Source: Epithemia pelagica
Lineage: Eukaryota; Protista; Bacillariophyta
Direction of reading: 5' to 3'
DNA length: 64,000 nucleotides
Assembly: GCA_946965045.2 (NCBI GenBank)
Contig: OX337239.1
Location: 2,728,001 to 2,792,000 of the forward strand
The translations under genes and the position numbers were made by a program. Position 1 is the stretch's first letter; each line of letters opens with the position of its first letter. Below, piece after piece: positions 4,104 through 20,259 of the stretch. Under the pieces are notes generated by a model. The model did not search any database, was not told the origin of the DNA, and saw only the letters and a program-made list of their open reading frames with translations.

Positions 4104-4455
4104 CGATTCTGGAGAAGAAACATGGCTGAAGTGGTTATTCTCTTGTCCACCGAACGGAGGATTTTACAATTACATGTTCATCTTCAACGTGTGTTACAAG
4201 GCATGCATGTCCGAGGTGGTCGACAAATAGTGGTCGAAGACCTGCCCAAAAGGATGATTTCTTCGGACAAACAAGGAAGAACAATTCAAATCTATATATC
4301 GTCGTAAAAACCCATTCCTTTAAGTTCCAGTAAAACCACAAAACCTCCTTCTCTTAAGTCCGTGCAGTAATTATCTTTCTTGCCAGTTGCATTCACATTC
4401 GAATTCTTTACTCTTGATTAGGAGACTCATGCTTAGGAGCTTCTTGTTATTCTAC

Positions 4456-4694
4456 TGAATAAATAATCACGGGCGCCCCTTTGTAACCTACGAAGGGCCT
4501 CGCTATGCCTCGCTACGCATCGCCTGGTATCGCCCGGCCCATAGTTGCGTGTTCGCTAGTGGGTACCGTGGTCGCTGTTTGGCCCCTACGTGAGCGATTT
4601 GCCCCCAAAGGGCACCCCTAGTTTAGTTACCATAATTTCTGATAGTTTGATTGTTGCAAGCCGTATATTGCGTCTGGCCGTCAGTTTTTATTCA
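4456..4694 (+). repeat. 5' LTR of the CoDi element (239 bp)
   Basis: Direct repeat of 10197-10436, with 4 substitutions and 1 indel by eye. Ends are TG...CA. Confidence 0.95.
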
Positions 4695-4711
4695 GTTTAT
4701 CAGACCCACTG
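4695..4711 (+). promoter_or_regulatory. Primer-binding site GTTTATCAGACCCACTG
   Basis: It abuts the LTR-terminal CA. An identical 17-mer abuts the unrelated LTR of the second CoDi (reverse complement at 57647-57663). Confidence 0.8.
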
Positions 4712-5189
4712 TCTGTTGTTTCCCCACTGTTCGCCGGACAGCAAGCGCCTGATCAACGCTCGGGAGTTGTTCGCGCTAAGCAGCTTCGTCACTCGCTCGC
4801 CTGCGTCATCTCTGTGACTTGTTTTTGTCACTGTGGGACCCACTCGCTAATTTGTGACTTGCGACTGCACAACGTACCGTGCACGTGCTCGTACACTTGG
4901 ACCGTCCATCCACGCGCGCCGTACGACTCAATCATTAAGCCTGCTGGCTTTCGACACGTGCCTGCTTGCTCGCGGAATCGCCGGTTCGCCGACTCGCGGA
5001 TTCGCCGATCGCCAACTCGCTCGCTCGCGGAATCGCCGGACGACTACTCGCCGATTCACTCGCAGATTGTTGGCTCACAGAAATTCGCTCTTCCCATCAC
5101 AATTGCAAATTTCTGCACAAGAACAAGCCTTCCCTTGCCATCCGTTTGACCTTCTGCTACCCTCCTACCCTTCATCCGACCCTTGAACC

Positions 5190-6448
5190 ATGGCCGCAAA
5201 GGCCTTCCGTACTGCACTGGGCCGCTGTGGCTACGACAATGACACCGTTGAGCACCTAACGCAACAGGGCTTCACAACAACGGATCAGTTCCTGGAGTTT
5301 CCCATCAACGAAGTCAAGCCCATGCTGAAGACATTAGCCAAGAACCTACCCGACGGTGTGACTCTACCCTACCAGTTCAACCTGAAGTTCCTTGGCTTCC
5401 GAATGTGGTTGGAGTACCGTTCTGTCCGTGGTCAGGACCTTGATGCTGGTGCTTATACTGGTGACGTAATCACCAAGTGGATGAAACGCGTAACGGAACT
5501 CCTGAATGCCACCACCACTGATGGTCAGGATGACCCAGTACCACCCAAAAGGCTAACGAACCTCGCCGATTGGGAACGTCACGACGGAATGTGGCGCACG
5601 TACTTGGGTCAGCACCGCGATCCGACAACGGGAGTGTCACCTACGTATTGCGTGAGGAGTCCGACGTACCGGACGACGCACTAACCGCCGATTACGACTG
5701 TATTGACGACGACCTAGTCGCGACCACTCGTCATGAGGGGGATCAGTACAAAGCCGACCGACGCAGAGTGTCTGAGCTGTACTACCCTCTTATCTACGAT
5801 GGCCCGGCATGGACGTTTGCTAAAACGCATGCGAAATCAAAGGACGGCCGTGAGGCCTACCTAACCGTCAAGCGGCAAGCCACTGGACAGGCCGCGAGCA
5901 TCCTGCGCAAGAAACAAGCTTATGCGCAGATCGCAAATGCTAAGTTTACAGGACGAGGGAAGTACCGCTTCCATGACTACATCCACCGTCACCAACATGC
6001 GCACAACACCCTGGAAGAGCTTGGCGAAACGGTTGCGGAAACGAAAAAGGTGACCAATTTCATGAATGGGATCACCGATCCGACGCTCGTCCAAGCCAAG
6101 ACCGTCGTTAACGGTGACCAGGAGAAGTTGGAGAACTTCGAAGCGTGCCAGCAAAACTTCTTGACTGTGCACAGTGCCGCCAAAACCGAAACGCAGGACG
6201 ACTCTCGCAAGATCGCCGCTGCTGGTACCACCCCAAGCAAAGGAAAGGGAAAAGGGCGCAATCAGAAAAAGAGCAAGAAGAAGAAGGACCGCGTTCATGC
6301 TGGTCACTACAATGCCAACGAATGGGCAGACCTGACAGAGGACGAACGCAAACAAGTCCTGGCTCTTCGCAAAGAGCGCAAAGAAAAGCGGAAGCTTGGA
6401 TCCGTCACCACCGACGACTCTTCCAACGCATCGTCTAACTGCCGATAG
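5190..6448 (+). pseudogene. gag: Copia gag with a frameshift at about 5650-5684
   Basis: ORFs 5190..5684 and 5570..6448 give a CoDi-type gag (YLGQHR...PLxYVLRE, AYAQIANAKFTGRGKYRFHDY, YNANEWADLTEDERKQV). Confidence 0.85.
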
Positions 6449-9400
6449 CCCATGGCAACCTCGTTCTACCGCCTTTGCGGACGGGGAGGAGAAACTGGGT
6501 GTAGCTGCCGCTACTGTCGTTCGCAATGGCGATCCGAATTCGATTGCCGCATCCTCCATTCCACGACTCATCAAAGCAGTGCGAACGTACCAGCATGCTT
6601 TTGCCAATCCATCACCCGATCTGGACGCCGACGCACAAGGCGACGACCTGTACGAACGCTTAATAGCGACGGTCACTGTTCATCCAGAGAAGGAGGAGCC
6701 TGATGTAGTCCCAGAGGACAAACGTGAACGTCGGCTGTACATGATCAAGACTGCTAACGAGTCTTCCCGAGCCGATCCTGCTGGTAAGGGAGTGCTTGAC
6801 GCAGCCGTACTGTCACAACGTTGGGGCATTGGTTTACCCAAAGCGAAGAATACGCTTAAAGTGACGACGCAGGCTGGAGTACGAAACGTATTAATCCCAT
6901 CTGAGCGTAAGGTCCGTAAGAAGGCACCGTGGCTCAAGTTCCCTAATGTGAAAGGCCGTTGGTTCTCGGACGAGATGTTTGCCAAGGAAGTATCACTGAA
7001 CGGGGACACGGGCGCCTCGATCTTTACAGACGGCAAACGATTCGACCACGTTTATCCCTGGAAGTCGAAAAAGCAACATCCTGAAGGATTGATGTCTTTG
7101 ATTCACAATGTAGGGATTCCCCAAACAATGGTATCTGATGGTGCCCGAGAATTGTTCCTAGGGAAGTCCCTGAAATATGCAACGAGTACCGCATAAAGAT
7201 GGAGAAAACGGTTCCTTATAGTCCATGGCAGAACGCCGCTGAAGCGAGCATTCGTGAACTAAAGAAGGGAGTTGTCAAAATTATGAGGACGACCGGCGCA
7301 CCACGACGTTTATGGAGCTATGCTCTTAAATGGTGCTCACACGTACGGCAAATCACGGCATCCGATATCCCTGAATTAGATGGACGTACACCCTTCGAGC
7401 ATGTAATTGGCTCAACGCCAGACATCTCTCCATTAGCCATGTTCCAATTCTATCAGCCGGTGTATTATCGCATGCCCATGGCACAGTTTCCCTTCGAAAA
7501 AAGACTGATTGGCCGATGGTTGGGCTTAGCCAATGATTGCACCGATGATATGGCCTATGAAATCCTAACGCAAGAGGGCAATCATGTCACACGAAAAGAT
7601 GTGTGGGCCATTCCGGAAGACGACCTGAGGAATCCGACGATTCATCAGCAGTTGTTGGACTATGATACCGCTATTCAAACGCAAATGAAAGAGCCGCCAT
7701 CTGATGGCACAACTGGGAGCGATCCACCCCCAGACCTCTTTGACGAAGGTGAACTTCTAGAGCCCTTGTTCCCAGAGGCCAAAGCCCTGGAATCCGACGC
7801 GTACACGCCGGAGGAACTAGACGAATACCTCACCGCTGAAGTCATGCTGCCGCGAGGAGGTGAAAGCGCTCGAGCGAAAATCATTGGACGCACGAAAGAT
7901 GCTCATGGGCGACCTATTGGTGAGCGCGACGCAAACCCAATCCTTGATACCCGGTACTACGACGTACAGTTTCCGGATGGATCGGTCGAGTCGTATGCAA
8001 CCAATATGATCGCAGAGAATCTGTATTCGCAAGTTGACCCGGAGGGCAATGCGTTCAACACATTGAAAGCCATTGTGGGTCACCGCAGTGATGAGACCGC
8101 AGTTAAGCGAACAGACGCATCGTTCCTTGACGGCACATCACACCACACAACGAAAGGCTGGGAATTGCAATGTGAACTATCCGATCAATCAACTGTTTGG
8201 CTGCCGCTCAAAGACGTCAAGAATGGAAATATGATTGAAGCCGCCGAATACGCAGTATCCACTGGCATCGCAAAAGAGCCTGCTTTTGCATGGTGGGTGC
8301 CACGTGCACTTCGCAAACGAGACCGCATTATCAAAAAGGTAAAGTCACGTTATTGGAAGCGAACGCACAAGTATGGCATTGAGCTGCCCCACTCTGTAGA
8401 AGAAGCCCTGGCGATTGACCGCCAAACGGGGACTGACTTCTGGCGTAAGGCTATTGAGAAAGAAATGAAGAACGTTGGCATTGCTTTCGAATTTCCAGCT
8501 GATGGCGAAGTGCCTTCTGGATACAAGCATATTCCCTGTCATATGGTTTTTGATATCAAATCAGATCTGCGACGAAAAGCACGGTTAGTGGCCGGAGGCC
8601 ACAAAACTGATCCACCCAAAGAATCGACCTATTCTAGTGTGGTATCACGCGATAGCGTACGCATTGCTTTTACTATCGCTGCACTAAATGGTCTAGATGT
8701 TCTCGTCGGGGACGTGCAAAACGCATATCTCAACGCACCGACTAAAGAGAAGACCTATACCACCGCCGGACTCGAATTTGGACCAGATAAGGTTGGACAA
8801 CCTGCACTGATAGTGCGCGCATTCTATGGTCTCAAAAGTTCTGCCGCAAGGTGGCGTGATCACATTGCCGCAACGCTCCGCGATATGGGATTTAAGATGT
8901 GTCAAGCTGATCCTGATGTATGGCTTCGAGCGAACACTCGACCATCTGATGGGTTCCAGTATTACGAGTATGTTTTGGTCTATATTGATGATCTGCTAAT
9001 TGTTAGTCATGATCCCAAAACCGTGATGCAGGACCTGCAGAGGCGCTATACGATCATACCCGACAGTATCAAACCGCCAGACGAATACTTGGGATCCGAA
9101 ATTCGGCGTTATACCATACCCGACACGCAAGATCCGTCGAACCGTGATCGTTGGGCCATGTCCGCTGACAAGTATTGTAAGCGTGCTCTTGCCGAAGTCG
9201 AAACGGAAGTGGAGAAATCCGGAGAAAAGCTGAAGTCAAAAGTGACGACGCCAATCGCCGATGGATATCGCCCGGAATTGGATGCGACTCCTGAACTCGA
9301 CGCAAGACGTGCGAACTATTACCAAGGACTAATCGGTATTCTCCGTTGGATTGTTGAACTCGGTCGTATCGACATTACAACCGCAGTCTCCCATATGTCC

Positions 9401-10075
9401 CGTTTTATGGCGAATCCACGAGAAGGACATCTCGAGCAAACGTTGCACATCTTCGCGTATCTGAAGAAGTACAATAAATCCGCCATTGTGTTCGACGACA
9501 CAGCCCCTGACTTTGATGAGTCACGTTTTACCCGGCCGGATTGGTCTGAGTATTATCCTGATGCTGCCGAGGCGATTCCGCCAAACGCACCAGCACCGCG
9601 TGGTAACGCTGTCACCACGACTTGCTTTGTCGATGCTGATCATGCTGGATGTCGTGTCACACGGCGCTCTCAAACAGGAGTCCTACTGTTCTTGCAAAGA
9701 GCACCGATCATGTGGTATTCAAAACGACAAAACACTGTTGAGACGTCTACATTTGGCAGTGAGTTCGTGGCGGTGAAAACTGCCATTGAAATGATTGAAG
9801 CATTTCGTTATAAGTTGCGAATGATGGGTATCCCGTTGGATGGAGAGACGAATGTGTTTTGTGACAGTGAATCTGTGTTTAAGAACTTGACGCAGCCGGA
9901 ATCAGTCCTAAAGAAGAAGCACAACGCAATTGCTTATCATCGGACTCGTGAAGCGCAAGCTGCTGGACTTGTGCGCATTGCATGGGAAGAAGGTAAAACG
10001 AATCTTGCCGATATCCTAACCAAACTGCTACCCGGGCCTCGATTGCGATTCCTGGCCCAACGTATCATGTGGTAG
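6396..10075 (+). pseudogene. pol: Copia pol (pre-integrase, integrase, RT, RNase H) with a frameshift at about 7150-7196 and no protease motif
   Basis: Motifs LSQRWGIG, FSDEMF, VSDGARE, PYSPWQNAAE, KARLVAGGH, DVQNAYL, VYIDDLL, FVDADHAG, FCDSES and NLADILTK are present in order. Confidence 0.95.
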
Positions 10076-10196
10076 CACCCCTTTTAAATCCAAAATGGGA
10101 TCGCCCCTTTTGAAGAATAGTCCGACGTACTGGACCGGCCTCTGCTGACATGACGAACTAAACGAAGTTGCCCACCCCGATTTTGTTCGCGGGGAC

Positions 10197-10436
10197 TGAA
10201 TAAATAATCACGGGCGCCCCCTTTGTAACCTACGAAGGGCCTCGCTATGCCTCGCTACGCATCGCCTGGTATCGCCCGGCCCCTAGTTGCGTGTTCGCTA
10301 GTGGGTACCGTGGTCGCTGTTTGGCCCCTACGTGAGCGATTTGCCCCCAAAGGGCACCCCTAGTTTAGTCATCATAATTTCTGATAGTTTGATTGTTGCA
10401 AGCCGTATACTGCGTCTGGCCGTCAGTTTTTATTCA
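10197..10436 (+). repeat. 3' LTR of the CoDi element (240 bp)
   Basis: Near-identical to 4456-4694 and preceded by GGGGAC. Confidence 0.95.
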
Positions 10437-10915
10437 CTACGGTGGTCCTCTAGTGATTCTCCGGCGGATCCACATCAATGGTACTGACGGACTCTTGCTT
10501 ATGAGACTCTTGTTTAGGAGCTTCTTGCTAGTCTGTGTCGTGCTTCTTATTTGGCAGTCCATACCTAACACCCAACAGGTCTATTGCCTTGTCCACATCC
10601 TCCATTGAAATTTTATCTGAAAGCCAATGAACGCTGCATGTATCATCATGCAGTGCTCATGGGTTTTGCCTCAAATTATCTAAGTCCAATCGAGGAAGTG
10701 TACAAGGTAATAGGATCTGAAGGGGTTGCAGAGGTGTACTTTGGAGACCCTTGCCATACCGAGTGTGAATTCCTCATCTTTCAAGGATTAGGGTAGACAA
10801 CAAATCTACCAAACAATGGAGCTAGACACCATATTCTCTTCATAGCTTCAACGGCAATTCTCGGTGAAGCGTTCCAAGACTCAATAGAAGCGCTAGTGAC
10901 AGCGTTCACCGTGGC

Positions 10916-13841
10916 TTACTCCAAATCCTTAGGCGGTTCCGAATCCTTACTAGGTGGTGCGGCTTGTTTCTGGTCAGTCATGTTCAAGTCCTCAGCGGCA
11001 ATCGCTTGCTCCGAATCCATATTCATGTCCTCAACGGCAATGGCCTGCTCCGAATCCTTAGGTGGTTCCGCTTGTTGCTTTGAGTCCACCTCACGAGTTG
11101 CGGTAGCAGTCGCTTGCTCCGTGGCTTGCTCTGAATCCTTAGGTGGATGATTTGTGGCAGAGGCATGAGTTGTGGCAATGGCTTGCTCTGAATCCTTAGG
11201 TGGGTCCGCCTGCAGCTTTAAATCCTTTGGTTGGTCCTCGTCCACAGCAACGGCTTGAGTTGTGGCTTGTTTCCGGTCGGCCATGTTCAAGTCCTCAGCT
11301 GCAATGACCCGCTCCAAATCCTTAGGCGGTTCCGCTTGCTTCTCTGAATTCGAGTCCTCCCCGTCTTGCATCCGATCCGTTGCCTGTTCAGAATCCTTCG
11401 GTGGTTCTGTCTGCTTCTCTGAATTCGAGTCCTCCCCATCTTGCATCCAATCCGTTGCCTGTTCAGAATCCTTTGGTGGTTCTGTCTGCTGCTTAGAGTC
11501 CACCCCATGAGTGGCGGCTGCAGTCGCTTGCTCCATGGCTTGTTCTTCATCCTTAGGTGGATGATTTGCAGCAATGGCAGGAGTTGTGGCAGTGGCTTGC
11601 TCCGAATCCTCACTAGGTGGTGCGGCTTGTTTCTGGTCAGTCATGTTCAAGTCCTCAGCGGCAATCGCTTGCTCCGAATCCATATTCAAGTCCTCAACGG
11701 CAATGGCCTGCTCCGAATCCTTAGGTGGTTCCGCTTGTTGCTTTGAGTCCACCTCACGAGTTGCGGTAGCAGTCGCTTGCTCCGTAGCTTGCTCCGAATC
11801 CTTAGGTGGATGATTTGTGGCAGTGGCATGAGTTGTGGCAATGGCTTGCTCCGAATCCTTAGGTGGGTCCGCCTACAGCTTTGGATCCTTTGGTTGGTCC
11901 TCGTCCACGGCAACGGCTTGAGTTGTGGCTTGTTTCCGGTCGGCCATGTTCAAGTCCTCAGCTGCAATGACCCGCTCCAAATCCTTAGGCGGTTCCGCTT
12001 GCTTCTCTGAATTCGAGTCCTCCCCGTCTTGCATCCGATCCGTTGCCTGTTCAGAATCCTTCGGTGGTTCTGTCTGCTTCTCTGAATTCGAGTCCTCCCC
12101 ATCTTGCATCCAATCCGTTGCCTGTTCAGAATCCTTTGGTGGTTCTGTCTGCTGCTTAGAGTCCACCCCATGAGTGGCGGCTGCAGTCGCTTGCTCCATG
12201 GCTTGTTCTTCATCCTTAGGTGGATAATTTGCGGCAATGGCAGGAGTTGTGGCAGTGGCTTGCTCCGAATCCTTAGGTGGTTCTGCAGTCGCTTGCTCCG
12301 TGGCTTGCTCAGAATCCTTAGTTGTGGCAGTGGCTTGCTCCGAATCCTTAGGTGGTTCTGCAGTCGCTTGCTCCGTGGCTTGCTCCGAATCCTTAGGTGG
12401 ATGATTTGCGGCAGTGGCAGGTGGATGATTTGCGGCAGTGGCATGAGTTGTGGCAGTGGCTTGCTCCAAATCCTTAGGTGGTTCCGCCTCCCGCTTTGAA
12501 TCCTTTGGTAGGTCCTCGTCCATGGCAACGACATGAGTTACGGCATTGGCTTGCTCAGAATCCTTAGCGGCCTGTTTCCGGTTCGGACACTCCGTGACAG
12601 CCAGGTTCGACTCCACTTGATTAGAATCGGTTGTGGCCTGCTTCTCGTCGTGGTCATCTCCCAACTCTCTTTTCTCATTCACTGTTGCATTCAATGACCT
12701 TGCGTTCGCCCCCCAAAACCAACCAATCGTATGTCCGTCCTGTTTTGTATGAGTATGAACTGACGTTCCATGTCGGATAATTCTCCCATCCCATGCAATG
12801 GAACATCCGTGGAACAGACGAAAACATAGTCCACTGAATGTTGTTTCCCTATACTTGATGAGCACATTAGGTAGGACGAAATACCAATCACGTATACTCC
12901 CTGGTTTGGTTTCAGTCCATATAGTAAATGAAACTGATGCGTCATGGATGTCATAATGACTTGCGTTCATTAGGTCACAGCTTAAAAGCATGGACGTAGA
13001 GACACCTCTCGATTCCCCACCGAGCACATCTGGGATCTTCCCTCCACAATTTGTCTCCATATGCCGTATTGCTCCTAAGACCCTAGGGAGTTTCCGCTCG
13101 CAAAACCTTCGTACACCGCAACTTTTTTTTTGGTAGGACCCTTCCTGTATCCGGGGCGATTTTCAGGAGCTTGTCGGAAAATACAGTTTCTCTGTCACCT
13201 GTTTTAGCACAAGTACCAACCGTTGTCATCGAACCTCGGTCACAAGTCTTACACCTGGCGTTGGATGCACGTTGTAGTTCGTTTCTATCAATAAACATAC
13301 AAGCCCTCTCATGCAATAATGATAACAGGTTGTCATCTGATCCAGCCAATGAAGTCACTTTCAGGTGAGAGATACTTTCCGGTCCTCCTTGGAATTGGCG
13401 TGTCCTTATAATGAAGACTGCATCACCAGACTCGCGTTGATCATATCGTAAGCAATTCAACTGTTCGTCATTGTCTATATTCTGGTAGAGCGCCCCCTGG
13501 ACATACTTCCGACAACCACGTTTGTTACTTGAATTTCCAGGTTCCAGGGCCGCCCTGTATTTTACTCTGAGATCATGTTGACCGGCCGTTTTCGAATTAG
13601 GATTCTCTGTAGTGTAAAAGTTGGGGGCAACAAGAGGCGCTCCCGATTCGGTGTCGTTGAGTTGATAACATTCGTGTGTGTTTCTTGTCCTTCTAATCCA
13701 ATCTAGAGACCAAACATTCTTGATATTCTTTATGTAGGCTCCTTTTGCAGGTTGTCCATCAGAATGACGCAGGCGCAACCACGACAAGGGTAATGGGACC
13801 AATTACGACAGAGAATTTGGCAAGGCACACCCGGAATCCAT
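10916..13841 (-). pseudogene. TET/JBP-like Fe(II) dioxygenase with a long acidic tandem-repeat C-terminus, carrying two in-frame stops and one homopolymer frameshift
   Basis: ATG at 13841 and TAA at 13803-13805 lead into ORF 13083..13802 (...CDRGSMTTVG). A frameshift at the T9 run 13123-13131 continues as RRFCERKLPRVLGAIRH into ORF 11873..13060, which has NASHYDIHD (HxD at 12950-12958) and WDGRIIRHGTS (His at 12770-12772). TAG at 11873 is CAG in the duplicated repeat, and the frame continues into ORF 10916..11752. Confidence 0.7.
10926..12500. repeat. Coding tandem repeats: a 663-bp unit present about twice, built from shorter PPKDSEQA modules
   Basis: ACTAGGTGGTGCGGC occurs at 10949 and 11612, giving a period of 663. 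Many CCGAATCCTTAGGTGG submodules are present. Confidence 0.95.
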
Positions 13842-13893
13842 TGAACGTGTTGATGTATAGAATATACCTGCCAAAGGCATGATTAGAATGATA

Positions 13894-15730
13894 TCATGGA
13901 ACAGATGGTCCTTTTTTTTCACAATTCTCTTTTGACGTTTGGCTTTGAATGACCTTGTCGTCGAATACTGATTTCATGACACTCGGTCTCCCTCTCCGAA
14001 TGCGGTTACACCTTTCTAACGTACATTCAACAAGGAAGGCACACGGGGATGAATCGACCAGATTACTAGGATTGCGTTGCTTGACGGTGAGCGACCTGTC
14101 TCGAAAGGCACAATGACTGGCTGTGTCCTCTGTATTTTCTTCAACATTCTCCTTCATACTCTCATACACTCGACTCAGTTTTCCCATTACATTCGGAAGA
14201 TCGGCGGCCGACACTCCATCCCTTTCGAGTAAGTCGTTTAGACACAGTTTGAATACTATGCGGTCTTCATTACAGGCAAAACAACATGACAACAAGTTAC
14301 CGAGTAGATCCATCTGCTTCTCACGGTCAATTCGTGGAGAGAACAGACACATGGCTTGATGGTCATCTTCGTTTGGTTTCGAGTACTTCATAGGAAAACC
14401 ACTCGGGGTCTCTGCTTGTCTTTTTTGAAACTTCTTCAAAGTCTCTCTTGTCAAGGTTAGCTTGGATAAGCCTTTCTTTTCCACTTCTTTGTTTGTCGGT
14501 AGCGGTTTGGGATCCTTGTATTTTGTTACTTTGGTCGGTCTGTTGGTGGTTGCTTCAGAGTCGTCTTGTTCAGGTTCACTTCTGGCACTCTTTTTCCCGT
14601 GACCATCTGCTCCTATTTCCGGTATAGTACCTCCCGTCAATGCCTCTGTTGTTTGTGAATCATCACGATGTCCTTGCCTAGATGCAAGCTCACGATTAAC
14701 CGAAGGGTAACTGGCACGAGATGATGGGTCGTGATTTTTGTTCCATCTATTCGAACCGCTCCGTTCATGAGTATGCGAACTATGATCTTCCTACCCTGGC
14801 CTGTGTCCACCGGTAGACATGCGTTCTCTTTGATCACTATTTGCGGAATAACGACCGTCATTGCTACTTCTTCGGTTTATAGCGGGCGACTCTCTTCTCT
14901 CCCGGTAAGTCCACCGGTTCAGAGGAGGACTCCTATAAGTGGATGAAGGATGGTAGTCGTCAGTATGATTTGGTCTCCAATCATGATATGAAGATCGATT
15001 CATGTTGTGCGATCCATGGTTGTGACGTCTGTCACAGTCCAGAGAACTACCACTATTCTTCCACCGGTTGAAATTAGGACTTGCGCTTCCTGTTGTCATT
15101 GTCGGTTCACCTTGTGACGGACGACAGCCCCACCCATCCGATGTGCTTCCTGTTCTCATTGTCAGTTCACCTTGTGACGGACGACAGTTCCAACCGTCCG
15201 ATGGAACAGTAACACCCGGTACTGCTGTTGGGTTCTTCGCAAGTCCCCAAGTCTGTCCACTTTGTGATGGCCCTGACACTCCTCTCATTTGTTTTTTTCG
15301 CTACTCCCCAAGAATCTTGTTGTGAGTTCGGTTCTCTGGACATATTATTATTACTGCTCACAGATCCCCATGATGAAGACACTGATACACTTGGATTCAT
15401 AGCGGAAGTATTTTTGGTATTCCTTCCCCAAGTGGACGGACTGGCATAACGAGAATGAGATGCACTTGCTACTCCAGTGACCTCTCTCTTCCCACATGTC
15501 GACATTCCTGTCGAATTGGAAGAACAATTTTGCTCTCTAGATCCCGTCGCACGATTCTGTGTACTAATTGTTGGCGGTTCCTCTAAATTGATCACAACGT
15601 CAGTTGTCGGTGAAGGTGGCGGTTTATATTCTCGTTTGTGTGTCACGATACTGACGATACCATCTTCATTGATTCCATTCGATGCATCGAAATACTTGAA
15701 TGTCCGATTGTATCTCGACACTTGGGGCAT
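13894..15730 (-). pseudogene. Protein with a Ser/Gly/Asn-rich WG/GW-repeat region and a C-terminal helical Cys-containing domain, carrying one frameshift and one stop
   Basis: ORF 15167..15730 joins 14791..15288 through the T7 run at 15292-15298. TAG at 14791 is in frame with ORF 13894..14640 and the intervening 50 codons are open. Motifs: STWG, SSWG, DSWG, QTWG, DGWN, DGWG. Confidence 0.55.
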
Positions 15731-15846
15731 GTCTTGTTACTTTGTCCTTCCTCATTTAACCACTCTCCTATACACTGTCGACAGAAGCAATGATCACAGT
15801 CCTTGATCCGACAATCCACAAATCTGTAGCTTTTGGCTTCCCCCTT
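15640..15846 (-). pseudogene. Second RING finger (C3HC4 type) in a frame missed by the ORF track
   Basis: Minus-strand translation EAKSYRFVDCRIKDCDHCFCRQCIGEWLNEEGQSNKTCPKCRDTI. The first CxxC is degenerate or frameshifted. Confidence 0.7.
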
Positions 15847-16202
15847 TCAGATCCAATAGGATTTGATATCTTCTTACTAACCACAGAGGTCTTATCTCTA
15901 GAAGAACCGAAAAGATGCTCGTTACCGGTGATCTTCTTGTTGCACTTGGGGCAAGTCACGCTATGATGTCGAAACCAAATTCGAAGGCAACTTCCATGTA
16001 CCTTGTGTCCACACGGGTACAACAAACAAACCTTGTCATCATTTTTCGCTTTCAAGGGACGTTGACACAACACACAACACTGCTTCCATGTTGTGTCCTC
16101 GTCGAGAGTAGTTTGGATAACATTTTTCGTCTTGCGAAGAACCGCGAGCTGTTCAAGCGACTCTTTTGGGCAAAGCGAGTAGTTAGGTACGTAACGCAGC
16201 AC
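15768..16202 (-). CDS. RING-H2 finger segment, in frame with ORF 16236..17309 across one TGA
   Basis: CVLC-x16-CGHKVHGSC...CPKC. Read-through gives LSD*GCSDVFSNEADVLRYVP. Confidence 0.8.
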   Translation of the reverse strand: MLRYVPNYSLCPKESLEQLAVLRKTKNVIQTTLDEDTTWKQCCVLCQRPLKAKNDDKVCLLYPCGHKVHGSCLRIWFRHHSVTCPKCNKKITGNEHLFGSSRDKTSVVSKKISNPIGSERGKPKATDLWIVGSRTVIIASVDSV

Positions 16203-16235
16203 ATCTGCCTCGTTGCTGAAGACATCAGAACAACC

Positions 16236-17309
16236 TCAATCAGACAAGCCTCCTCTTAGACTTATCTCGTCGTTGTAAGCGTCCCAATTCTGTGAATCAC
16301 CGATTTCGTCGACACTCTTCCTCACTCTGGAACATAGCGTTAAGGGTCTAAAGGCATTGTCTTCCAGAGCCATTTCAATCCCCCTAGCGAACTCGCAGTT
16401 GTATCTGATTTGATTTGATTTCCAAGAGGTGGTTGGTCTCATTGTCGAATCTACTTCCCCATACTTGCGGTGTTTCCCATGTGGACGATCCAGCAGTAGA
16501 TCCCCAAGAAAGCGCACCACAATTGCTTGGGGCATCGGTTTTGGTCCTGATCCTGATGGCTTGGGCATCTGAACAGTCCGGTAGGTCCAGTCCTCCGCAT
16601 CAGTAATATCACCCTGGTCCTCCCAAGGTTTCAGAATTGCACTATTTCTGTCCTTATCGACGATACTCCATTTCTTCAGGATGTATTCACACGTTCCTTT
16701 CCAAAAGGTAGGGGAACGGTTGTCAACAGGCTCAAAGATTAGACAGATCATCTTCGAAAACTCACATACCAACAATGCCGGATCAGTTATGTCATGTAAG
16801 GAAGTTGTAGCAACGATCCCCAGTAAAGTTGTTACACCTTCAACCTTCCAAGACTCAATGGGTATGGGATTTAGCATATCATCAGACTCTAGAGCTGTTG
16901 TTGCCACCCTGTCAACATAGACGCGTTCACTGTGATAGCGATGCACCATAAGTTTAATGCAAGTATCGAATGATGTTGCATCAAGTCCGAGTCGTCCTTT
17001 ATTGAAAATCAGATCGCGACGACGATTGCGATGGGGGATATGTAACACATGGGATGCCGATAGGATATCGTCGTTGATCAATCCACTGAATTTCTTGCAC
17101 TTCTTACAACAAAAGACCACTTGGATATCAACTTCGGTATTTGGAATCTCTAGACCTGAAGCATAGTTAGTCGCCAATTTCATTGAGGTTTGGAGTTGCT
17201 CTTGTAGCATTTCCGAATCATCTTTCGCAAATTTAACAAGATAGTTGTCGCCAATGTTGTCTAACGGTTCATCGGATTGTAATGAATCAGTCGACCGAAC
17301 GTGTGACAA
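16236..17309 (-). CDS. Unknown domain, possibly a catalytically degenerate Ulp1/C48-like fold, belonging to a family repeated at about 32 kb and 44 kb
   Basis: The 357-aa ORF is homologous by eye to the degraded ORFs 32211..32453, 43903..44199 and 44242..44493 (C[IL]KLM[VI]H..H..VYVD[RK]V; KFA..LAT.YA.GL). The Ulp1 likeness is a weak pattern match only. Confidence 0.5.
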   Translation of the reverse strand: MSHVRSTDSLQSDEPLDNIGDNYLVKFAKDDSEMLQEQLQTSMKLATNYASGLEIPNTEVDIQVVFCCKKCKKFSGLINDDILSASHVLHIPHRNRRRDLIFNKGRLGLDATSFDTCIKLMVHRYHSERVYVDRVATTALESDDMLNPIPIESWKVEGVTTLLGIVATTSLHDITDPALLVCEFSKMICLIFEPVDNRSPTFWKGTCEYILKKWSIVDKDRNSAILKPWEDQGDITDAEDWTYRTVQMPKPSGSGPKPMPQAIVVRFLGDLLLDRPHGKHRKYGEVDSTMRPTTSWKSNQIRYNCEFARGIEMALEDNAFRPLTLCSRVRKSVDEIGDSQNWDAYNDEISLRGGLSD

Positions 17310-17330
17310 GGGATCTTGTACTTGGGGAAC

Positions 17331-18611
17331 TTATATGAATGAAACTGATGGTGATGGAATTGGAGTCTGTTGTCCACCTTCTATCGGAATCACTTTGACA
17401 GGAGGTGGTGGTGCCGATTTACGCTTCAGTGCTATTCTGTTGAAGGTTTCATGTCGGGTACCAGTTGCCAATGTCGTAGGTTTGTCACTATCTGTCACGC
17501 TTAAAGTCGGTTGGGAAGGGAGTACCGGCCTCTTGGAATCCTTGCGTGAATCGCGTTCACTCTCCACAGTCTTCGTTCTGCTTTTCCGTGTCGAAGGTGT
17601 TACATGGTCCGTAACCGAAGCATGGCGTCTACTGGCTGCAACCTCTTTTGATTTCCTGGAGGATAAGGATTCCTGTTTCTCATAGAATGACGCTACGATA
17701 TAAAACATCCCATTGGTATTCGTCGTAGAGGCCTTGTTTTTCATCCTTTCTTGAAGCGAATCACGTTCATCAATATATTGATTGAACCAAGTATCTGGCG
17801 TGGTATAAAGCAGCGCCTGTTCCATTTCAATATCAGTGAGAAATGGCTTTCCGTCATCTGCCTGGAGTATGGAATAGATCTGTTTCATATGCTCCAGGGC
17901 CCAGGTAACCTTCGAGGTTGGAACGGATCGAGGTTTTCGGTACTGAGAGACATCTCCAATCAGGTACTTCTTGAGTGAAAGAGCAACACGACCAAGTCCA
18001 CTTTCATCCCCAGCAAATATCCCATGATGACTGAGGAAATGTCGGAAAACATCCATCAGGCTAGTATAATCGACATATTGAGATGAGGAATCAGGGAAGG
18101 CTTTTCTCCAAATAGAAGCAGAAGATCCATATAAGGTTTTGCGGAAAAGAGATATCGTAGTATTCAATGTAACACTGTTATCCTCTTCCATTTCTGAAAT
18201 AAGTCGTTTGAGACAGTATGCCGTGTGACAGCACAAATCTACCAAGGCAGTAGCATCACAAATTGGTAGATAGACATGGACTTGGTTGGTACCCTGCGAC
18301 ATAGAGACTGTCGAAAATTTTCCTGTTTCAGGACCACATACACACTCATACCAATACAACATATTCTCGAAATTGATCGGAGACTCGAGGCAATCAGCAT
18401 CTACTGTTCCCGGATGTACACTCGGACGAGTAGTAACCGGTGTAGTCGTATCTGCCAGTTGTCCCGATCGACTGCCGCATTGTCCCTCAGATCTCGTTTG
18501 TTCCCTCGAAATACTTTGTTCCGAAGCTCTGGCGTGAGTATCCCGATGCGGAGAAGGGGGGTTCTTGTACCGTGGTCCTTTCACAGCTTTTCTCCTTCCT
18601 GCCATGATCAC
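17331..18611 (-). CDS. Retrotransposon gag-like protein segment with no pol, in frame with ORF 16236..17309 across one TAA
   Basis: LFRKTLYGSSASIW ... YRKPRSV ... LTDIEMEQALLYTTPDTW resembles Ty3/gypsy-type gag from memory. Read-through gives SFI*VPQVQDPLSHVRS. Confidence 0.5.
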   Translation of the reverse strand: MIMAGRRKAVKGPRYKNPPSPHRDTHARASEQSISREQTRSEGQCGSRSGQLADTTTPVTTRPSVHPGTVDADCLESPINFENMLYWYECVCGPETGKFSTVSMSQGTNQVHVYLPICDATALVDLCCHTAYCLKRLISEMEEDNSVTLNTTISLFRKTLYGSSASIWRKAFPDSSSQYVDYTSLMDVFRHFLSHHGIFAGDESGLGRVALSLKKYLIGDVSQYRKPRSVPTSKVTWALEHMKQIYSILQADDGKPFLTDIEMEQALLYTTPDTWFNQYIDERDSLQERMKNKASTTNTNGMFYIVASFYEKQESLSSRKSKEVAASRRHASVTDHVTPSTRKSRTKTVESERDSRKDSKRPVLPSQPTLSVTDSDKPTTLATGTRHETFNRIALKRKSAPPPPVKVIPIEGGQQTPIPSPSVSFI

Positions 18612-18714: not shown

Positions 18715-20225
18715 GGACTAGGGAGAGAGGTCCAGGAACTTCCTTGACGAAGCACTCTTGTTGTAGCGTATCCTCGCAGTAGTCTTCTAGATGGAACTTC
18801 CTTAAAAAAGCCCCTTTGCTGTAGCGTCTTCTTCCAATGACCAGGTAAGGAAGAATGAGAAGCCCGATTAGCCTCTTCCTATCAACACGACAAAGTCCAA
18901 TGTCGGCCTTTTGTTGGTAGTGTCTTCTGTGGAGTACACAGGACTAGGGAGAGAGGAGGTCCAGGAACTTAGCGCTTTTGTTGTAGCGTATCCTCGTAGA
19001 AGTCTTCTAGATGGAACTTCCTCAAAGAAGCGCTTTTGTTGTAGCGTCTTCTCCCAACGACCGCGCAACGAAGAATAAGAAGCCCGATTAGCTTCTTCCT
19101 CTTAACACCACAAATTAGGAAGAGCGAGCTACTTGAGCAGCTCTAGGAAGCGCTTTTGTTGTAGCGTCTTCCACGAACAATCGCCGTCTTCTTAGTGGAG
19201 AAGGAGTGTGGAAGAATCTGAAGCACTTTAGTTATAGTTTCGACAGATTCACTTCGATCTCTCAACAACACCAAGTAGAAAACAAGGGCGAGGAACTCTA
19301 CCCTTCAAGCTGCTCCACCCCCAGAGGAAGCGCTTTTGTTATAGCGTCTTCCAGTGGACAACCACAGTCTCGTATCAAGTAGAGAGGTAACAGGATAGCA
19401 GAAGCACTTTTATTGTAGTGTTGACCGGATTCCTTCCCTCGTATCCACCCAACGTGGAACAGTGATCTATCCCTGAGGAGGGTGCTCGTCGTCTTCCCTC
19501 TTCGACCCTTGGGAAAAATCAGGACAGAGGAACCGGTTAGTACCGTGTTCACTCAGCTTGCTTTGACCTGTCCTGATTTTCACAAGAGTCTTAGAGGTAG
19601 TATCTGGACTTGACGAGTACTTGCAAAAAGACTTGAGGGGCCAAAAGTCGCTTTGATTGTAGCGATAACTTTCATCGTGCCCCCAAGTTGTTTCTTGTAC
19701 ACTGGACCGTTGCTTGTTTTCGAATGATGTCGGAAGGCGGTCGATCGGAATGAACAATGGGCGATTCAACAATCAAATATTGTCTTCTTCCTTTCTTCTG
19801 ACGATTGAGATTTGTAGGGAAACAAGGAGAAGAGAAGGAGAATCAAGAAGCGGACCAAGTCGAAGTCGCTTTGATTGTAGCGGTTACTTTCGTGGTTTCG
19901 ACTTGCTTGCGATCAGAAAGAACCAGAGGATGATTCAACAATCAAAATAGAGTCTTCTTCCTTGCTTCTGGTGGTTGCGATTTTCAGGGAAAGGAGGTGG
20001 AAAAGGAGGGAGAATCGAATGAGAGCTCTGTCAGAATTCTGCACCAGTGGTAACGTTTGTGTCCTCTCTTGCTTGTTTTGATGATCGATCAAACAAAAGG
20101 ATGATTCAACAATCAAAGAGATACTTCTTCTATGCTTCTGGCAGTTGAGGTTTTCAGGGAAAGGGGAAGAAGAAGAGACAACAAAAACCAACCGATTCGA
20201 AAGTCGCTTTGATTGTAGCGATTAC
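18715..20225. repeat. Diverged tandem or dispersed repeat array with core AAG(C/TC)GCTTT(T)G(T/A)TTGTAGCG
   Basis: About 9 copies of the core motif (e.g. near 18745, 18807, 18970, 19027, 19148, 19327, 19645, 19862, 20201), a roughly 225-bp duplication (18715-18900 and 18941-19115), and three GATTCAACAATCAAA modules. Confidence 0.85.
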
Positions 20226-20227
20226 TT

Positions 20228-20259
<32 letters not shown>

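Follow-up and report, generated by a model that had tools for sequence, protein, structure and literature searches.

What is an array of Trp-Gly (WG/GW) motifs, resembling those that serve small-RNA silencing as Argonaute-binding platforms, doing in a gene that seems to travel with a diatom transposon? The question is raised by a stretch of 64,000 nucleotides from Epithemia pelagica (contig OX337239.1 of assembly GCA_946965045.2, positions 2,728,001 to 2,792,000; hereafter "the window", to which positions refer unless stated otherwise), in which an initial annotation had pointed to six such motifs resembling an Argonaute hook. In the arrangement proposed here, a disordered array of 20-residue repeats would link a double-RING module to a TET/JBP-like dioxygenase within a very large accessory protein encoded by a multi-copy DNA transposon. 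Whether its partner is Argonaute (AGO) or some other receptor, the tract is probably a multivalent array of Trp motifs that is kept under constraint within a disordered linker of that protein, and the best single reading, that of an Argonaute hook, is given a probability of roughly 0.4 from motif, spacing and composition.

A periodic tryptophan array

With a frame break at a run of seven A bridged, the minus strand from 15120 to 15435 was found to encode all six motifs of the initial annotation, STWG, SSWG, DSWG, QTWG, DGWN and DGWG, the Trp codons of which start at 15430, 15370, 15310, 15249, 15192 and 15132, respectively. STWG, SSWG and DSWG belong to an open reading frame (ORF) of 187 residues (15167-15730), the other three to an ORF of 165 residues (14791-15288). 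Translations, together with spacing and shuffle tests, delimited a proximal array at 15043-15445, in which a Trp recurs about every 20 residues amid sequence rich in S, G, T and N. On the same strand follows a distal array (14743-15042), which was recognized from translations and by comparison with a paralogous copy of the gene (L001, on ENA ERZ21939226 ctg1304l) and which comprises NFNRWKN, YHDWRP, PLNRWTY, PG(TAG)ED and GSNRWNK; this downstream continuation has NRW at 15063, HDW at 14979, NRW at 14913, an in-frame TAG stop at 14791-14793 and NRW at 14745. The stop stands in place of a Trp codon, which is TGG in the paralogue (PGWDD). The full array is about 230 residues long, reaching to about 14743, and the corresponding tract of L001 holds nine WG/GW motifs.

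In a core of 134 residues, Ser (27), Gly (16), Thr (12) and Asn (12) account for 50%, which bears out the S/G/N/T-rich context described by the initial annotation. Six of the seven Trp in this core adjoin a Gly, an adjacency that had a P of 5e-4 in 200,000 composition-preserving shuffles; when the young duplicate unit was removed, P was 1.8e-3 for adjacency and 7.5e-5 for WG alone. The Trp-Trp spacings along the array are 20, 20, 20, 19, 20, 23, 28 and 22 residues, and a run of five gaps of 19-20 was obtained only once in 1e6 random placements (P ~1e-6). Because both the adjacency and the spacing were significant, the WG motifs are not a chance pattern. Conservation of the hexamer TGGGGA at the nucleotide level was dismissed as evidence, given that GGA makes up 49% of the Gly codons of the gene and that its occurrence in four of four units has a P of ~0.06.

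When the array is divided in register, its four older units, from STWG to QTWG, have 33-45% DNA identity, with an nnTGGGGA core (encoding [ST]-W-G) and the 60-nt spacing in common and little else, and the two DGW units are 88% identical. Because units 1-4 are nearly unrelated apart from this core and this spacing, the region is best read as an ancient series of 20-residue repeats that has retained the Trp, the adjoining Gly and the period, whereas the remainder has drifted. The Trp would then be the functional contact residue of a multivalent array of short motifs.

The youngest part of the tract is seen in the DNA as a 60-bp tandem repeat at 15085-15203 (Tandem Repeats Finder, 2.0 copies, 89% matches), with 20-residue units of the form DGW[NG]CRPSQGE.TM.TGS.S. 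The initial annotation took this for a duplication that had added a motif, a view that did not survive a three-way alignment: the window has two units, L001 has four, and four are also present in L003 (ctg1312l), which is the locus of the window in another assembly or haplotype, at 99.7% identity. Because L001 and L003 each hold four units with the same unit-specific variants, the window owes its two units to contraction or to collapse during assembly and has not gained one. The array expands and shrinks in frame, by units of 60 bp. The difference between L003 and the window would be due either to haplotypes that vary here or to long-read errors in homopolymers and collapsed repeats. In L003 one of the four units (~10560-10690, against 15085-15203 in the window) is spoiled by a run of twelve G.

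The homopolymer that shifts the frame within the tract, A7 on the coding strand and T7 on the plus strand, lies at 15292-15298. From the Trp codon of DSW to the ATG of MRG there are 22 nt in the window and 20 nt in L001, where 21 nt would keep the frame. An intron or a programmed frameshift at the A run was ruled out, as one copy has a nucleotide too many and the other one too few, and the break points to homopolymer indels, either real or sequencing errors.

The comparison with L001 also bears on the hypothesis that the tract is a neutral low-complexity linker, which slippage of 60-bp units made and still remodels and in which Trp and Gly are simply carried along. The tracts of the two copies differ by 2 synonymous and 14 non-synonymous changes, giving a ratio of non-synonymous to synonymous differences (pN/pS) of about 1, which at ~3% divergence and with very few differences has no power; pN/pS is also about 1 in most other segments, the exceptions being the TET part (0.21) and one N-terminal part (0.32). 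Trp conservation in paralogues had been put forward by the initial annotation as a check on the array, and in L001 a single one of the ~11 Trp codons differs (TGG against TAG in the window), where about one hit is expected, so that retention of the others at ~3% divergence cannot discriminate between constraint and neutrality. These figures suit a neutral linker, as do the unit number that varies between copies (2, 4 and 4), the Trp codon that is now a stop, the many TET-like relatives that do without such a tract, and the fact that GGA is simply the commonest Gly codon. Under neutrality, however, Trp with its single codon should be the first residue to go, and yet units whose identity is near random have kept Trp, the adjoining Gly and an exact 20-residue spacing. 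A neutral linker is therefore held to be rather unlikely beside an array under constraint.

Composition, disorder and fold

The resemblance to known WG/GW domains was scored with the dos score of Karlowski et al., re-implemented from their Table 1 with a drop-off of 8.6 half-bits; this re-implementation has no calibration on positives, 41% of seeded domains pass the 6.99 threshold of the paper, and only the ranking it gives is meaningful. The bridged tract, with an X at the break, scored 24.4 half-bits for the first four motifs, and the remainder scored 7.7 and 17.1. Scoring of the motifs, as the initial annotation had suggested, gave a divided answer: every other stop-free stretch in the six frames of the 64-kb window scores lower than the tract, and its uncalibrated 24.4 lies at the boundary between weak and medium (25) in the Karlowski paper. 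Published scores are far higher, ~90-107 for TNRC6 and >150 for NRPE1 and SPT5L (PMC2910046). According to the same authors, the NRPE1 repeats follow the same pattern as seen here, with only the WG core kept between units (PMC2910046).

An AlphaFold2 (AF2) model of the L001 tract piece (P0004) had a predicted local distance difference test score (pLDDT) of 33.5 over all 137 residues and no fold, which, for a model from a single sequence, is weak evidence of disorder. The Pfam search of the tract gave no domain match, and searches of the ESM Atlas and of PDB sequences gave nothing usable. A folded repeat domain, either a beta-solenoid or propeller-like, might be suspected from a weak phmmer match of P0004 to the designed WD40 repeat protein 6r60 (E = 0.0045) and from an insignificant match (E = 6.6) of the Pfam beta-solenoid model RDM3_C to the tract of P0055, a relative described below. 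Repeat-versus-repeat matches inflate such scores, though, the period is 20 residues and not the ~40 of such folds, almost no hydrophobic strand residues are present and the pLDDT is low, which together make a folded domain very improbable in comparison with a disordered array.

The gene around the array

The array belongs to an accessory gene that extends over 10916-18611 on the minus strand and was reconstructed by three-frame translation against L001. From the N- to the C-terminus it has an N-terminal region (no Pfam match), a RING-H2 finger, the remnant of a RING-HC finger, the Trp array, a middle region, the TET/JBP-like domain and a tail of PPKDSEQAT-type repeats. The RING-H2 finger lies at 15768-16202 on the minus strand (Pfam zf-RING_2, E = 3.5e-7, and 6.7e-8 in the L001 product), and the RING-HC (C3HC4) remnant was placed at 15643-15819 (minus strand) by translation and by matches of zf-C3HC4_2/zf-C3HC4 to the L001 product. 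At 15780-15830 in the window, the RING-HC finger lacks the stretch for its first Cys pair (YMPQVCMVCEDRF in L001, 8170-8260), so that the second RING of this copy is both truncated and frame-shifted.

The window copy of the gene carries no fewer than three in-frame stops (17331-17333, 16236-16238 and 14791-14793) and five changes of frame. A stop in one copy is sense in the other, as is seen when the window and L001 are compared (SFI*VPQ against SFIEVPQ, LSD*GCS against LSDGGCS, HNIN*SS against HNMNRSS), from which it follows that the ancestor was one ORF of ~2,500 residues and that each copy is decaying independently. Judged by its sequence, the window copy is a pseudogene and cannot make the protein.

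The TET/JBP-like dioxygenase domain, at 12700-13802 on the minus strand and split over two frames, was delimited by phmmer relatives, by its HxD...H residues and by AF2 and Foldseek. With the 700-residue TET-bearing L001 product (P0005) as query, phmmer found 596 TET-like relatives among 1.84e9 representatives; the typical relative has ~600 residues and a basic N-terminus, without RING or Trp tract, and none of the 596 is an intact full-length copy of the RING-Trp-TET gene. A model built by AF2 on 21 relatives had a pLDDT of 80.7, and its top PDB matches in Foldseek were human TET2 (E = 1e-6), Chlamydomonas CMD1, Coprinopsis CcTet and Naegleria Tet (NgTET1). The residues H333, D335 and H395, which correspond to the HxD...H iron site, are invariant across the 21 sequences. 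On account of the Foldseek matches and of the invariant HxD and distal His, the modelled domain downstream of the array is identified as a TET/JBP-fold enzyme.

The C-terminal tail (10916-12540, minus strand) consists of PPKDSEQAT-type acidic repeats with 75-bp tandem units, and holds a segmental duplication of ~1 kb (10938-11924 against 11601-12539, 87% identity).

A second TET-like gene with tryptophan repeats

Among the TET-like relatives, P0055 (1,739 residues) has a TET-like C-terminal domain with 28% identity (E = 1e-41), upstream of which are seven [GAD]NRW[DGA] repeats in RGG-rich sequence; it has no RING, and its N-terminus is unrelated to that of the window gene. Its 90% cluster contains five or more ORFs that are intact, with lengths of 1,719-1,756 residues. 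Three members that were looked up came from three ENA assemblies (ERZ28668934, ERZ28668858 and ERZ28656457), with the loci L004 295-5514, L029 476-5743 and L030 260-5419, and a word search with P0055 returned P0055 itself only. The tracts of this family contain 7-9 in-frame [NS]RW units in G-rich disorder, and their pN/pS of 0.22-0.31 suggests that the gene is under purifying selection, with the proviso that repeat misalignment may distort the counts. These values, and the fact that the tract is in frame in every intact copy, also speak against a neutral linker.

The P0055 family and the window gene are alike in the TET-like C-terminal domain, the periodic NRW array upstream of it, length polymorphism and a large second gene in convergent orientation. 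The P0055 family differs in that RING fingers are absent, the N-terminus is unrelated, the units are RGG-rich and ~16-17 residues long, WG occurs once and the ORFs are intact. The P0055 tract has a dos score of 42.7 with this single literal WG (by the same uncalibrated re-implementation). These loci probably represent a still active element that belongs to another, unrelated family; the convergent neighbour of the gene is an intact gene of 1,263 residues with no Pfam match.

The context of the Trp residues in the two tracts opens the question of the receptor. NRW occurs at three of the distal Trp of the window and at six Trp of P0055, and at 1 of 1,031 Trp in the other relatives listed. A ligand common to both tracts would not be strictly specific for WG/GW, and the array might tether or regulate the RING-TET protein through another partner, without Argonaute; candidates would be a CNOT9-type Trp pocket, an E2 or a substrate of the RING module, a chromatin reader, an import factor, or stacking on single-stranded nucleic acid. 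A constrained, periodic Trp array in a disordered region fits such a partner equally well, the NRW of both families and the RGG-rich context of P0055 fit an RNA- or protein-binding array without WG/GW specificity, the compositional score is weak, and not every AGO has the pockets. In contrast, the motifs of the proximal part, six to eight in number, are strictly [ST]WG or DGWG, with the canonical dipeptide of AGO hooks, and no tool result suggests another receptor. Another partner is accordingly held to be rather unlikely, and the discussion returns to the Argonaute hook.

Argonaute as a possible receptor

The sequence hallmarks of a WG/GW platform appear to be present, namely WG adjacency, a spacing of at least 10 residues, polar disorder and conservation of WG alone between the old repeat units. 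Known platforms (the Argonaute-binding domain of GW182/TNRC6, the C-terminal domain of Arabidopsis NRPE1, SPT5L/KTF1 and S. pombe Tas3) likewise have reiterated Trp-Gly in Ser/Gly/Asn/Thr-rich disorder, keep only WG and composition between units, place their Trp at least 10 residues apart and vary in array length. The window tract differs from them in having only 6-9 WG/GW motifs and a weak compositional score, in the presence of Met, Val, Cys and Leu in its units, in the NRW of its distal half, and in being transposon-encoded, fused to RING fingers and a TET-like enzyme, and known from sequence. The studies of Elkayam (2017) and of Sheu-Gruttadauria and MacRae (2018), cited in PMC12477606, reportedly imply that a spacing such as that of this array suits separate Trp pockets.

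That a parasite should imitate a host Argonaute partner has precedents. The P38 protein of TCV is a viral GW mimic that binds AGO. Parasite-encoded GW mimics that bind AGO are also found in P1 of SPMMV (PMC2904775) and in HopT1-1 of Pseudomonas (bioRxiv 10.1101/215590). All three are proteins of a pathogen or genomic parasite whose WG/GW motifs could engage the silencing effector of the host, as may be the case here; they are, however, viral or bacterial, with few motifs and shown AGO binding, whereas the diatom tract is a periodic array with catalytic partners. For the enzyme, the closest likeness is in the fungal KDZ/Plavaka lineages, where genes for TET/JBP dioxygenases occur on DNA transposons (PMC12730594). 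There, too, the TET/JBP-fold enzyme is transposon cargo, presumably directed against silencing by 5-methylcytosine (5mC), whereas in the diatom its fusion partners are two RING fingers and a Trp array. The 2025 survey of the fungal transposons makes no mention of RING, tryptophan, Argonaute, diatom or stramenopile (PMC12730594). In the diatom Phaeodactylum, small RNAs of 25-30 nt map to methylated transposable elements and an AGO-like gene exists (PMC4247016).

The proposed mechanism would have two possible routes. The likeliest receptor of the array would be the Trp-binding surface on the PIWI domain of the host's Argonaute, as in GW182, NRPE1, SPT5L and Tas3. By docking onto AGO-small-RNA complexes directed against the element, the array might bring the TET-like enzyme to methylated copies; alternatively, it might present AGO to the RING fingers, leading to its ubiquitylation. 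By either route the element would blunt small-RNA-directed silencing. In a functional sense the RING and TET-like neighbours would fit counter-silencing. The suggestion of the initial annotation that the tract acts as a suppressor of RNA interference (RNAi) or as an AGO recruiter is an argument from motif resemblance, and the complete machine, in which the array hooks loaded AGO and either TET is guided to methylated copies or RING ubiquitylates AGO, is a tentative and somewhat doubtful proposal.

Several observations weigh against an Argonaute hook. Apart from P0055, a Trp tract was seen in 0 of ~150 TET-like relatives, and a metagenome scan with alignment A2 gave 24 short loci, again with 0 Trp tracts; a metagenome scan with the protein gave no match, and word, phmmer and metagenome searches found no intact copy of the RING-Trp-TET gene and no orthologue with its domain order. 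The pN/pS of the tract is near 1 between copies, a figure without power, as noted above, and one Trp codon has been lost in the window, in a pair of copies too alike to gauge constraint. The dos score only reaches the border between weak and medium, and the units contain M, V, C and L, residues that known platforms tend to avoid. The P0055-family Trp are in NRW[DGA] contexts with one literal WG. Finally, according to a 2025 analysis, the Trp pockets of AGO are fully conserved as a metazoan feature and variable elsewhere (PMC12477606).

A search of the available literature found no transposon-encoded WG/GW array, none fused to RING and a TET-like enzyme, and no RING-TET fusion in diatoms. Were the array to bind Argonaute, one parasite protein would unite targeting by small RNAs, ubiquitin ligation and 5mC oxidation, and diatom RNAi, of whose effectors and partners little is known, would gain a directly testable interaction. 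Should it not bind Argonaute, the periodic Trp array in two TET-carrying families would still mark a docking motif worth identifying. To our knowledge, transposon-encoded anti-silencing proteins are few, an example being VANC of the plant VANDAL elements, and mimicry of Argonaute partners by WG/GW motifs is known to us from viruses and one bacterial effector. If the counter-silencing machine were true, it would have arisen or been retained at least twice, given the NRW array that lies upstream of the same enzyme in the unrelated element family of P0055.

The host element and its copies

L001 is a 96.7% identical copy of more than 13 kb, which aligns with the window from 20228 down to 283. It is non-allelic: its flanks differ, a Copia insertion of the window is absent from it, and another Copia is inserted elsewhere. 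The Copia neighbours are of the CoDi type, in keeping with a diatom. A non-allelic copy with different flanks and nested insertions supports the placement of the gene in a repeated mobile element, and with it the statement of the initial annotation that the tract is transposon-encoded. A word search with the 187-residue tract piece had a paralogue fragment on L001 (P0001) as its sole match. No obvious terminal inverted repeat was found at ~20228, where the homology with L001 stops and which may not be the true end of the element; the window there (19740-20235) has short internal direct repeats and a CAA microsatellite.

The RING-bearing 623-residue product had P0002 (41% identity) as its sole match in a word search. 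P0002/P0007 (L002, 8956-12188), from the assembly of the window, represent a second family that has the N-terminal domain (41% identity) and the RING-H2 finger, followed by a different Cys-rich C-terminal domain and lacking both Trp tract and TET. The Copia-type long terminal repeat (LTR) retrotransposon nested in the element of the window occupies 4434-10483; its LTRs (~4454-4694 and 10195-10436) are 97.9% identical, and its pol ORF (7199-10075, RVT_2) has 958 residues.
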